This document shows, piece by piece, positions 14,156 through 19,100 of a stretch of 64,000 nt of DNA (its first letter is position 1; the number at the start of each line of letters is the position of its first letter). A program made the position numbers and the translations under genes. The notes below the pieces were generated by a model. It did not search any database. It saw only the letters and a program-made list of their open reading frames with translations, and was not told where the DNA came from. Source of the stretch: Bugula neritina (taxonomy: Eukaryota; Animalia; Bryozoa); the NCBI GenBank assembly GCA_964035545.1, contig OZ037771.1, positions 11,784,480 to 11,848,479 of the forward strand. The letters run 5' to 3'.

Positions 14156-15791
14156 GAATATGAATATAAATGTGAACAGAAGTACTAAAATAAATAATAT
14201 ATGAACATGAATATAAGCATGTGTGTGTGTCTATATGTGTGATTTTATTTATACATAAACTACATTTTGCAGGTTAATGATGATAGTTTTGTAACGTCTC
14301 ATCTAAGTGGGCAAGCCTGAATATTCAACACAGTCAAGACAAAATATATGTACTAATTATATATATATATATATATATATATATATATATATATATATAT
14401 ATATATATATATATATATATATATATATATATATATATATATATATATATATATATATATATATAAATATATATATATATATATATATATAAATATATAT
14501 ATATGTATATATATATATATATATATATATATATATATATATATATATATATATATATATATATATATATATATATATATATATATATATATATATATAT
14601 ATATATATATATATATATAATAACATAATATTATAATAGCATTCAATATTATACAGTGGCAGTCTAAATCTGGAAATGCTTTGCTAGGTGGTGTTTGGCG
14701 GGTTAATGAAGTAATAAATCATTAACCTCATCTATAATATATCATTTGAATTATTTTGTCAGTTATCAATGGTAGAGATATAGTGCAGGCGGACTAAAAG
14801 GTATTGCTGGTTTAGGTGGCATTTGATAAAATTATAATACTAAGCTAACCGCTAATACCCCAGAATGTTTCAGTTAAATATAATATTATTTAAATTGATG
14901 CAGTAATATTGTGACATTCTGCAGTTTGCAAATTAAAACTTATACTTGCAATCACAGCTTATATACATGCATGATTGCACAATTAATGCCATTTTAATAA
15001 AGCTGTGTCTGTTTGGCTCTGGTAAACACAAAACTAGGTCGATACCCTCAGCTATGGTATGCACATTGTTAGAAACATTTGAACAATTTACATCTTATTG
15101 ATTAATGATTTAGGCACCCCATTTTTTGTTATATAAAACTTCAGTCTAATCTAAATGGTTGTTGCAAAAGTATTTTAGTGCAGGTGTACTAAACTCAATT
15201 TAATATAGCGCAAACATTTCAACCCATACAAGACAAGGAATCTAATAATTTGTCGAAAATTAACCTAGCTGTCATTACTACAGTGCTAACCTAGTAAACA
15301 AGGAGCCAGGGGCTCTGGTTGATGATATTTGGAATAACGTCCAGTTATAATAACCCTTGTGCCATATATTACAAATATGTTTTTAGTTTTTCTTTGTTCT
15401 GTCAGGGGTTCCTACAGGAATAGCAAATATACAATTTTGAAAGTGAGGAATTTAATTGTCTGCATATTTATTCCTAAAATTGAAATTTCAGCTTGTTTTC
15501 TATAATAATATAGTTGCACGCTATTTACATTCATTTTTTCTAAGTAAAGTGGAGTTATATATATATATATATATATTACGCTCTCATTTAATGCTCAGCA
15601 ATGACATCAAATGATTGAGCACTCTCACCATGGTCACAAACTCAAGCTGCTAGCATTTTGCAATGCTCGTGACTCCTAGGTGACCCCTAGAGTCACTTGA
15701 GCACTCTGGCTTGAGTTTACACACCTTTTAAATATGCTTTAGTAAAACTATAAGTTTTACTATTGCGAAGGTGTGGGCCATGGTACTCTGT

Positions 15792-15838
15792 TCTGTGCTG
15801 ATGAGGGGACAAATCCCGAAACAGCTGCTGTTCACAGA
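15792..15838 (+). ncRNA. Type I hammerhead ribozyme (GUU cleavage triplet)
   Basis: Stem I TCTGTG (15792-15797) / CACAGA (15833-15838); core CTGATGA (15798-15804); stem II GGGG-ACAAA-TCCC; GAAA; stem III ACAG..CTGT; triplet GTT at 15830-15832. Confidence 0.8.
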
Positions 15839-16062
15839 TTGAGATATTATGCTCTCATTTAATGCTCAGCAATGACATCAAATGGTTGAGCACTCTCACC
15901 ATGGTCACAAACTCAAGCTGCTAGCATTTTGCAATGCTTGTGACTCCTAGGTGACCCCTAGAGTCACTTGAGCACTCTGGCTTGAGTTTACACACCTTTT
16001 AAATATGCTTTAGTAAAACTATAAGTTTTACTATTGCGAAGGTGTGGGCCATAGTACTCTGT

Positions 16063-16109
16063 TCTGTGCTGATGAGGGGACAAATCCCGAAACAGCTGCT
16101 GTCCACAGA
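16063..16109 (+). ncRNA. Type I hammerhead ribozyme (GUC cleavage triplet)
   Basis: TCTGTG-CTGATGA-GGGGACAAATCCC-GAAACAGCTGCT-GTC-CACAGA. All conserved core nucleotides are present; predicted cleavage after 16103. Confidence 0.88.
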
Positions 16110-19100
16110 TATATATATATATATATATATATATATATATATATATATATATATATATATATATATATATATAGTGTGTATATATATATATATATATATA
16201 TATATATATATATATATATATATATAGTGTGTATATATATATATATATATATATATATATATATATATATATATACATATATGTATATACATATGTATAT
16301 ACATATGTATATATTGCACCTTTATAACATATATTTTTCTTTTCTTGAAGCAATAATCTTTGCCAAAATCAGGAGTAACTATAGATTATTTCTAAATATT
16401 AGCAGTATCAAAAATGTATACTTAATCATAATATTATTTATAGCATCTTCATTGATATCTCAATGCATATTAAAGATCATAGATATTCTTGTATCTCCCA
16501 CGTTTTTGTATCATCGGCATGAAAGGATTCAAAGTATATTTATTGAATATACTGAAAATCAGTCACTTATATTACTACTTTGGAGTTATGTTCTTTGTAT
16601 AAATGTATATTCCATATTACATCCTTTTGTAACCTGTTTCCTTTTTACCCATAATCCCTCTCTTTTGTTCCTGTGTCTCCATTAAAATAAATTGCTGAAC
16701 TGTATTATTGCTAAACTGAATAATCTATTTACATCTAAGTAAATCAACAATGTTGTCTAAATATTACATTGTTTACTTCAAAATTGTGTATACATATTAC
16801 GACGATGTTTAAAACACTGTTTGTTTAAGTTTGGGAAATGCAACAATAGGACGGTGTCACCCTTTTACTTAGTTGAATTGATTTTTTTAATTCCAGGTAG
16901 AAATCAGCTGAAGTAGCATGTTATTTTAACAATTATACCACAGCTACATAGTAGTTTTACAAGAAAAAATATATTTCTATACATAAATATTATCACATTC
17001 AGCTATATTTAAACACGTATAATATACCCTTTGCAACTTGAAAGTGAATAAAGATACTTTTGTAATGAGTGATCAAACTGAGTGTGCTTGTGACAATTGA
17101 AAATCAGTAAAAAGACTTCAAACTGCGTTAATCGCTATTTAGGATATCGGTTTTTTAATGTATCCTATAGCAACCAGATGTACACCCTGAACTTGGCAAT
17201 GTTACAGGATCTGTTTGCATAACTCTAGCTTATTATTGCCAATAAAATCACAACTGCAATTATTATGTAGATATATAAGTTGGAAACTCAAAGCAAAAAA
17301 CGCCTTTGAAGCAAATTTCTAAATAGTCAGTTTCTAAAACAGAAAATGTAAAGCAAAAAAGACAAATAATTATTATTTAAAATTTTACTTGGCACTAGAG
17401 TTGTTTCTGTGAAGTTTTTTTGTGTTTTTTTCCATAAATCATTGGAAAAATTCAAAAAGTAGCTTTTGAAAAAGATATCCTAATTTTGTATCAAATCGTT
17501 AGGCTATGTAATAGCCTAATATAATGGTGTTTATATTTTTATTAAATACATTTTAGGCTCTGTTATTTCATTTTTAGGATTCTTAAACAAAGAGAGAAAT
17601 ACCTATAAATAATTAGGTCAAGTTGCACTTTGGAAAATGTATAGAGCTTTTGCATTTTGCAACGCTGTTGATCCAGTGTTTCAGGTTCAAGCAAAAAAAC
17701 ATTTATTAAGGCATTTGAAATACGTGGTTTTTACACCACTTCTATGGAAACGAATCAGTTTTGGGCACACATAATGTAAGCTATATGAATTGCAGTTACC
17801 TACTGAATTGTTAGTGAATGCGTTTTACATCGACGTCTTAACAGTTTTTAATCTACCAATTGCTGAAAACAGTAGTTAATCATTAGTTAATCCTTTATAA
17901 CTTATATAAACTCGCGGTACCAATAGCGGCATAATGATTTTTCATGGTTTAAAGTCAACACTCCTAAATATATCACACTGGTGAGCAACCGCATCAATAT
18001 GATTTTAACGAGTTTCAGTTTGACTATAAAGGGGTACCCAGACAAGCATTATTAACTTAAACTTGGTACTTTTTTCAGCAGAGGTATAAACGAAACTTAA
18101 GACTTCTCAATTATAAATAATTAAGCATGATGAAAATTTGCCAAAATTTGATAAATTATTTTGTATTTTGCACTTTTTTTTATAAATTGATAGTTTTATA
18201 ATCTTTAAGGACTACTGTTGTTTGAATATTACAGTCGTGTGCAACAAAAATATTTTTAGGTATAAACTAACTTGACTAGACATAAAGTTACTTGTCAATA
18301 AATGAAATACAATTAACTTTATTTTGCTGCTCTTTATTTTGTCTCGTACAGATAACATGAGTGAAGGGGACTGAATTTTTTTCAAAATAATATTTTAGAT
18401 GAAATATTGCCAGATTGCTTGGCTTGAAAACACTATCTATATGCCTGAACAATCTCTCTTAGTCTTATAACACTGGCAAGCTGCTGTGAGAGCTCTTCTG
18501 TTTAGTCTATTCAACTCTAGTCCTTCTTATCTGTTGCAGATGTCTTCAATTAAACTTAATAGCAATTCCAGCTAGCTTCTGGCATATTTAAACTTTGCTG
18601 TCAGAAGCAAAATTAAAATAGGTAAGCACTTGTTAGCATTCATAAAAAGTTGAGGTCGGATATGTTAATTCAAAGTGGCTAGAAACATATAATAAGTATA
18701 TATATTCTAGGTAGAACTTAACAATAATGAGCTTAGCTGCATGTGTGTAGAAAGAAAAGTATGAAAGCAAACCAAAATGGTATACTACTTTTGATTATTG
18801 ATCTGTAAGCGTCTAAAAATCTCCTAAACGTAAATTATAGTTGCAGAAAACTAAAAAATTATAGGAATTTGAAAGTGTTAATGTTATCCCATATTTATAT
18901 ATTATGGCTCTTGATAAACTTGTATAATAACATTTTATATAAAAAATTTTCAACTTTGAGGTAAGTAGTAGATGACAGTAAAATAATTTCTGTAAAATAA
19001 TAATTCTTACTTTACTCAATGGATGATGCTTTAAGTTTGAATAATATTTACATGCAGTTAGAACTACAGTTATCAAAAATTCAGCTTTAGTGAACAATTA

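Follow-up and report, generated by a model that had tools for sequence, protein, structure and literature searches.

The small retroelements called metazoan non-long-terminal-repeat (non-LTR) retrozymes, and the link proposed between them and Penelope elements, have been described by Cervera & de la Peña (2020, PMC7229834), and an analysis of vertebrate genomes argues that animal retrozymes derive from the terminal repeats of Penelope elements (Li, Clavereau & Pollet 2026 preprint, bioRxiv 10.64898/2026.07.22.740005). In animal type I hammerhead ribozymes whose helix III is short and palindromic, cleavage takes place in multimers, and monomeric circles escape it (PMC4209133, PMC7229834); a bias for insertion into (TA)n has been published for the Penelope-like elements Naiad and Neptune (Craig et al. 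2021, PMC8557442). How animal retrozymes, a recently recognised class, return into DNA is still only a proposal. In this work we analysed 64,000 nucleotides of the bryozoan Bugula neritina (assembly GCA_964035545.1, contig OZ037771.1, positions 11,784,480 to 11,848,479 of the forward strand; hereafter the window), which lie on contig 7 of a 216-Mb assembly and carry, at 15573-16110, a short tandem array of hammerhead-bearing units. Our preferred interpretation, to which we give a probability of about three quarters, is that this array arose by insertion of two units of a young non-autonomous retroelement, one of the animal non-LTR retrozymes, which moves by the mechanism proposed below. The family is young and clean enough for its junctions to be read directly (they show a fixed start just past the cut site, strict targeting of (TA)n and copies of whole turns), and because a resident Penelope-like element behaves in the same way, the ideas of a circular template and of a Penelope helper become testable in one organism.

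The array consists of 1.96 head-to-tail units of 271 bp (Tandem Repeats Finder: period 271, 2.0 copies, 98% matches, no indels). Unit copy 1 (15573-15832, plus strand; Tandem Repeats Finder and BLAST) corresponds to family positions 12-271 and begins at the ATAT that also marks the 3' end of the family, while copy 2 (15833-16103, plus strand), delimited by the same two programs and by direct reading, is a complete cut-to-cut monomer of 271 nt. The two copies are unlike at five of 260 aligned positions, and BLAST aligns them over positions 12-270 at 98.5% identity. Copy 2 is followed by 7 nt of a next unit (16104-16110, plus strand), a shortened version of the 3' tail that measures 15 nt in most copies of our junction table, which passes directly into (AT)n. 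The array is flanked by the two remnants of its target microsatellite, a perfect TA tract upstream (15556-15575, listed by script and read directly) and an (AT)n tract downstream (16110-16314; Tandem Repeats Finder 16109-16314, period 2). Like the retrozymes of PMC7229834, the units are small (170-400 nt in that class), tandem and non-coding, each with a type I hammerhead; they are dispersed, have a GC content below 50% (43% here) and lack an LTR, a primer-binding site (PBS) and a polypurine tract (PPT), and a circular RNA and a Penelope-like helper are proposed in both cases. The longest stop-free run on four tandem units is 38-45 codons. Compared with the family consensus, copy 1 shows two differences, one of them T for C at 15832, and copy 2 shows five, two of them C-to-T at CpG; private changes number one and four in the two units, two at CpG sites, and the insertion is young, though not new. 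A preliminary description of the window, made from its letters, had reported two head-to-tail 271-bp units, a complete type I hammerhead in each, cut sites 271 nt apart and no coding capacity; Tandem Repeats Finder, a strict descriptor (see below) and the stop-free runs bear out each of these points, and PMC7229834 confirms its statement that the retrozyme class is a known one. For annotation, the locus is an ordinary repeat copy within non-coding DNA.

The two hammerheads of the array lie on the plus strand at 15792-15838 and 16063-16109. Helix I, which is open-ended, is of 6 bp (15792-15797 with 15833-15838, and 16063-16068 with 16104-16109), and is followed by CUGAUGA (15798-15804 and 16069-16075), by a helix II of 4 bp closed by a 5-nt loop (15805-15817 and 16076-16088), by GAAA (15818-15821 in hammerhead 1, and likewise present in hammerhead 2) and by a helix III of 4 bp with a 3-nt loop (15821-15831 and 16092-16102). 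The predicted cuts, after U 15832 and C 16103, are separated by exactly 271 nt. A strict descriptor, covering the core and the three helices, matches exactly three motifs in the window, these two and a third on the minus strand (47747-47701), and none in 100 dinucleotide-preserving shuffles; all core positions (CUGANGA, GAAA, U then non-G at the cut) are present in the three motifs. Hammerhead 2 is that of the family consensus, whose cut site is GUC; most sequenced copies have C at the position of 15832, and the private C-to-U change of copy 1 leaves a permitted nucleotide there. Four hammerhead families in about 300 kb of fetched loci have an invariant core in common with entirely different helices, and all four bases occur across them at the free core position 7. 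We regard each unit as carrying a canonical animal type I hammerhead, which is predicted to self-cleave.

The predicted fold of a single hammerhead is no better than that of shuffled sequences (z -0.91), as expected for a weak helix III. When two motifs are folded together, they form a double hammerhead whose helix III is intermolecular and of 10 bp, at -42.1 kcal/mol compared with 2 x -15.6 kcal/mol for the separate motifs; this model is in keeping with the published behaviour of short-helix III hammerheads cited above, and the dimer in the window supplies both motifs that a double hammerhead needs. The linear monomer (15833-16103) folds at -93.5 kcal/mol (z -5.75), part of the core pairing with the helix III strand in the minimum-energy structure, and the consensus monomer folded as a circle reaches -99.6 kcal/mol with 72% of its nucleotides paired (z -8.7). 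In minimum-energy structures two hairpins form around and just 3' of the ATAT at which insertions end (15840-15892, plus strand), a candidate region for recognition and priming by a reverse transcriptase (RT), and the junction region of fetched locus L004 folds with a z of -2.78.

The evidence for movement comes from the other copies of the unit. A DNA search of the genome gave 73 scored matches from 698 candidates, with 96-100% identity on nine large contigs, and a 35-nt hammerhead pattern occurs 506 times, its reversed control giving no occurrence. This is a family of hundreds of copies, and it is dispersed over all chromosomes rather than being a local satellite. We read the array ends of 27 arrays in fetched loci, and of 28 when the second insertion of the window is included. 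The 27 arrays have a fixed 3' end, which lies 15 nt past the cut site where ATAT runs into (AT)n, and 17 of them carry the full 15-nt tail; their 5' ends fall anywhere in the unit, so that an array comprises from 0.07 to 3.96 units. Throughout the genome at least 333 junctions consist of a hammerhead, the 15-nt tail and ATAT, and internal unit-unit junctions number 92, most insertions being therefore shorter than one unit. A TA tract is present on both sides of 25 of the 28 arrays (median 66 and 70 bp) and on the 3' side of all 28, and perfect (TA)n tracts of at least six repeats make up just 0.25-2.2% of sampled DNA. The asymmetry of the (TA)n flanks, used as a probe for tails made by an RT, was not significant in these 28 arrays (p = 0.14). 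Target-primed reverse transcription leaves as its signature a fixed 3' end, 5' truncation of variable extent and a specific target, and this footprint shows that the family moved through RNA. Fifty-four insertions begin at the same ATAT within (TA)n, which amounts to about 16% compared with 0.4% expected per position, and those that both start and end at ATAT are of 1, 2 and 4 units. Since insertions start 15 nt downstream of the cut site, the cDNA must cross this site at once, and the template is therefore not a simple self-cleaved linear monomer, but either a religated circle or an uncut longer transcript. A subfamily with a 272-nt unit was also observed (for example G000:C9:3146326-3147175), in arrays of at least four units and with G for A at unit position 12 in the tail; one of its 11 diagnostic changes is in the hammerhead and converts a G-U pair to G-C, these changes being too few for a test.

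A frame with a weak RVT_1 match adjoining the retrozyme at locus L064 (5082-3583) led to a family of young Penelope-like elements, with at least 89 matches that are 96-98% alike and mostly 5'-truncated. In a long copy (L070, G000:C8:1950800-1955300, minus strand 3922-1592) a 777-codon frame contains RT motifs and scores 41 bits with RVT_1; judged by eye, its C-terminal part has a GIY-YIG-like motif into which a Cys/His motif is inserted. The Atlas neighbours of the frame are animal RT families in which GIY-YIG is carried by some members. On each side of this frame, in the terminal repeats and 2752 nt apart, lies a minimal hammerhead: it has a helix I of 4 bp, a helix II of 6 bp and a bulged U, and the palindrome AUAU takes the place of helix III. 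This motif fits the minimal Penelope form of PMC4209133 and gave no match with Rfam. The element has 174 fixed 3' ends abutting (AT)n genome-wide, in two variants whose ends are 3 nt apart. It therefore matches the retrozyme in target, in 3' anchoring, in 5' truncation and in its greater-than-unit tandem architecture. The preliminary description had looked to Penelope open reading frames (ORFs) sharing the terminus of the unit: an active-looking element with the same (TA)n target and 3'-anchored junctions is indeed present, but it has no sequence in common with the unit. Genome-wide protein searches were of little guidance, since GIY-YIG (Pfam) gave a single match and the RVT_1 matches are dominated by LINE (long interspersed nuclear element) and LTR elements, with many LINE-type RT genes.

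Other elements were met in these loci. Three further hammerhead families have the same core and different helices, with GUA at the cut and ends in (TA)n (L066, about 3060-3260 and 7250-7470; L068, about 8170-8390; L064, about 2900-3010). Those of L066 and L068 form near-perfect head-to-head palindromes with one hammerhead per arm, and a 479-codon frame with distant similarity (22%) to the Penelope-like RT lies between those of L066. A candidate Penelope element on contig 7 near 14.92 Mb (L032, L033) was discarded, as it is just a strong RVT_1 fragment with no hammerhead; this 254-codon RT fragment (L032 5337-6098, minus strand, about 14.916 Mb of G000:C7) scores 122 bits with RVT_1, unlike the weak match of the Penelope-like frame, and is probably a remnant of a LINE or LTR element.

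These observations lead us to propose the following mechanism, in which self-cleavage, a circular RNA and a Penelope partner are all putative. A transcript with two or more hammerheads, such as one made from the dimer of the window, would fold as a double hammerhead and release a 271-nt monomer, which would be ligated into a highly paired circle. The endonuclease and RT of a Penelope-like element would nick a (TA)n tract, and the exposed DNA end would pair with the AUAU in or beside the small hairpin and prime cDNA synthesis. Synthesis would cross the ligated cut site immediately and could make more than one turn, yielding tandem units, before either halting early, which would give 5' truncation, or rejoining at the same ATAT after a whole number of turns. 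Insertions of 1, 2 and 4 units from ATAT to ATAT are what turns around a circle followed by rejoining at microhomology would give. We propose tentatively that the fixed junction is the genomic footprint of priming on ligated circular RNA, about 16% of insertions finishing at the same AUAU after 1, 2 or 4 turns; the pairing of the nicked (TA)n end with AUAU, from which the RT would run round the circle, is likewise possible but not something we would assert. Should this be true, the junctions would provide evidence, at the level of sequence, that an animal element is copied by circle-templated, rolling-circle retrotransposition, and it would also explain how a ribozyme parasite borrows the microsatellite targeting of a helper to which it has no sequence similarity. 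These elements are in addition a source of interruptions in (TA)n microsatellites.

The word "microsatellite" is absent from the main text of PMC7229834 and occurs once, in another sense, in the 2026 preprint, and word searches of these two texts did not turn up a fixed junction past the cut site. The family described here, known from DNA sequence, differs from the retrozymes of PMC7229834 in its strict (TA)n target and in its 3' junction fixed 15 nt past the cut, and also in that most copies are single truncated units instead of long arrays. With the hammerheads of Penelope elements (PMC4209133; 2026 preprint) it has in common a short helix III with a palindromic centre, a predicted action as a dimer, tandem or partial-tandem insertions and the presence of Penelope-like elements in the same genome. 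The hammerhead of the unit is nevertheless of the canonical animal form, with 6 bp in helix I and 4 bp in helix II, whereas that of the resident Penelope-like element is of the minimal form, in which a U is bulged, helix II has 6 bp and helix III lacks a hairpin; and no relationship in sequence to the terminal repeat of this element was found for the unit, whereas the preprint reports one in vertebrates. Newt satellite 2 and Schistosoma Sm-alpha are also repeats of a few hundred bp with type I hammerheads, cleaved as double hammerheads (PMC7229834; predicted here), but these are high-copy satellite or SINE-like (short interspersed nuclear element-like) sequences, whereas the present family has hundreds of copies in short, (TA)n-specific arrays. 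The (TA)n bias, the short terminal tail, the tandem and inverted insertions and the unreadable target-site duplications recall Neptune and Naiad (PMC8557442), which are autonomous and coding, Naiads being devoid of canonical hammerheads, so that here a non-coding hammerhead element uses the same target. Plant LTR retrozymes (PMC4918200) are similarly non-autonomous and hammerhead-bounded with circular RNA intermediates (a circle that we infer here), but their type III hammerheads within LTRs, PBS and PPT, 4-bp target duplications, length of 600-1000 nt and Gypsy helpers have no counterpart in this family.

Sequencing libraries contain the unit. In assembled contigs it was found in runs of one organism and in metagenome libraries of marine, biofilm and symbiont origin; one certain RNA library has contigs over 15623-15923, cut site included, and several probable RNA libraries also hold it. 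These contigs carry no RNA ends, strand or informative joints, so that their coverage shows the presence of the unit and not its transcription, cleavage or circularity, DNA carry-over being possible. Two metagenome scans for the hammerhead gave no match.

The retrozyme interpretation of the preliminary description is supported at the level of sequence by tandem non-coding units, type I hammerheads, young dispersed copies and a self-paired monomer, but several observations weigh against it. No Rfam hammerhead model reached its gathering score anywhere in the window, Hammerhead_1, the type I model of Rfam, not being among the models listed; the best scores were 13.5-15.2 bits for the RAGATH-1 hammerhead and 12.8 bits for Hammerhead_3, compared with cut-offs of 56.3 and 48.5. 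The preliminary description had looked to Rfam for confirmation, and only part of this was obtained, in that the RAGATH-1 alignment, weak as it is, reproduces the type I layout (helix I, core, helix II, helix III, GUC) with a score far under threshold; the permissive matches in 15400-16300 were AT-repeat artefacts only (mir-297, pestivirus untranslated region). The cleavage site of copy 1 is U where the consensus has C. Among 53 copies the core is not better conserved than the remainder of the unit (minor-allele fraction 0.0099 vs 0.0098), a result that the preliminary description had named as contrary to its proposal, but the comparison has no power and is uninformative because the copies are dead insertions, about 1% diverged and in neutral decay. 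The unit and the Penelope-like element have no common sequence (best local alignment 24, compared with 27.5 +/- 3.3 for shuffles) and no hairpins in common, the junction region of the latter having no significant fold; a short AGATAT-type end and the target are their only common features, which makes the Penelope partner circumstantial, and we infer the helper of the unit from behaviour rather than identify it. At least one other distant RT family in the genome has canonical hammerheads, and other Penelope-like families exist. Finally, the unit is at low depth in the certain RNA library, with one contig running into flanking DNA, and identical junctions, with no circle involved, would also arise from a linear read-through transcript that carried its own (AU)n flank.

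This last point can be developed into an alternative, in which a linear read-through RNA, transcribed from a genomic copy, serves as template and is inserted in the Penelope manner by priming in its own (AU)n flank; the tail would then be inherited, and neither cleavage nor a circle would be needed. Because the copies sit in (TA)n, any transcript of them would bear (UA)n at both ends, arrays never exceed about four units, a size present among the possible parents, the RNA-library contig does pass from the hammerhead and tail into flanking sequence, and the few odd tails are explicable by point changes or slippage. However, hammerhead cleavage would remove the 3' priming tail of such a transcript, so that the motif should decay, yet four unrelated element families keep an intact core with co-varying helices; the insertions starting at ATAT occur as 1, 2 and 4 units; and circles are documented for the retrozymes of other animals (PMC7229834). 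We consider a linear template unlikely, though it is the main alternative, and retain the retrozyme interpretation with priming on a circle as its tentative component.

Two further explanations concern the nature of the repeat itself. The preliminary description had itself raised the first, in which the unit would be nothing more than a terminal repeat (pLTR) belonging to a longer coding Penelope-like element, and the locus a solo or truncated end of it. It is true that the terminal repeats of Penelope-like elements bear hammerheads and that most copies of these elements are 5'-truncated (PMC4209133, and the Penelope-like family described above), with the same architecture of a partial unit, then full units and a fixed 3' end. 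Nevertheless, the 28 arrays are all bounded by (TA)n or unrelated DNA and never by an ORF, nearly all of the 506 hammerheads are explained by the terminal junctions (333), the internal junctions (92) and variant tails, and the Penelope-like element found is not similar to the unit, all of which renders this explanation extremely improbable. That the array is an ordinary satellite produced by unequal crossing-over, or a SINE-like repeat mobilised by a LINE, with the hammerhead as an inert relic, is suggested by the existence of tandem units, by the many LINE-type RT genes of the genome and by the motif being uncalled by Rfam. Crossing-over cannot, however, produce insertions that are mostly under one unit and dispersed on all chromosomes, the copies have neither poly(A) nor a LINE-like 3' tail, their 3' end and (TA)n target match those of the Penelope-like element, and the consensus keeps an intact hammerhead, a motif that shuffled sequences did not produce; we find this origin very unlikely.

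Elsewhere in the window, a second, independent insertion of the family lies on the minus strand at 47692-47938 (BLAST 98.3%, direct reading and descriptor). It comprises unit positions 40-271 and the full 15-nt tail, carries one hammerhead, the third motif mentioned above, and is bordered by (TA)n on both sides. The order of the short TA tracts between 49048 and 53730 repeats itself at an offset of about 2118 bp, suggestive of a tandem duplication of about 2.1 kb. Upstream of the studied array, an (AAGTAT)n hexamer array occupies 14000-14155, and the 158-codon ORF that overlies it (13728-14204), which has weak low-complexity Pfam matches only, is probably spurious.

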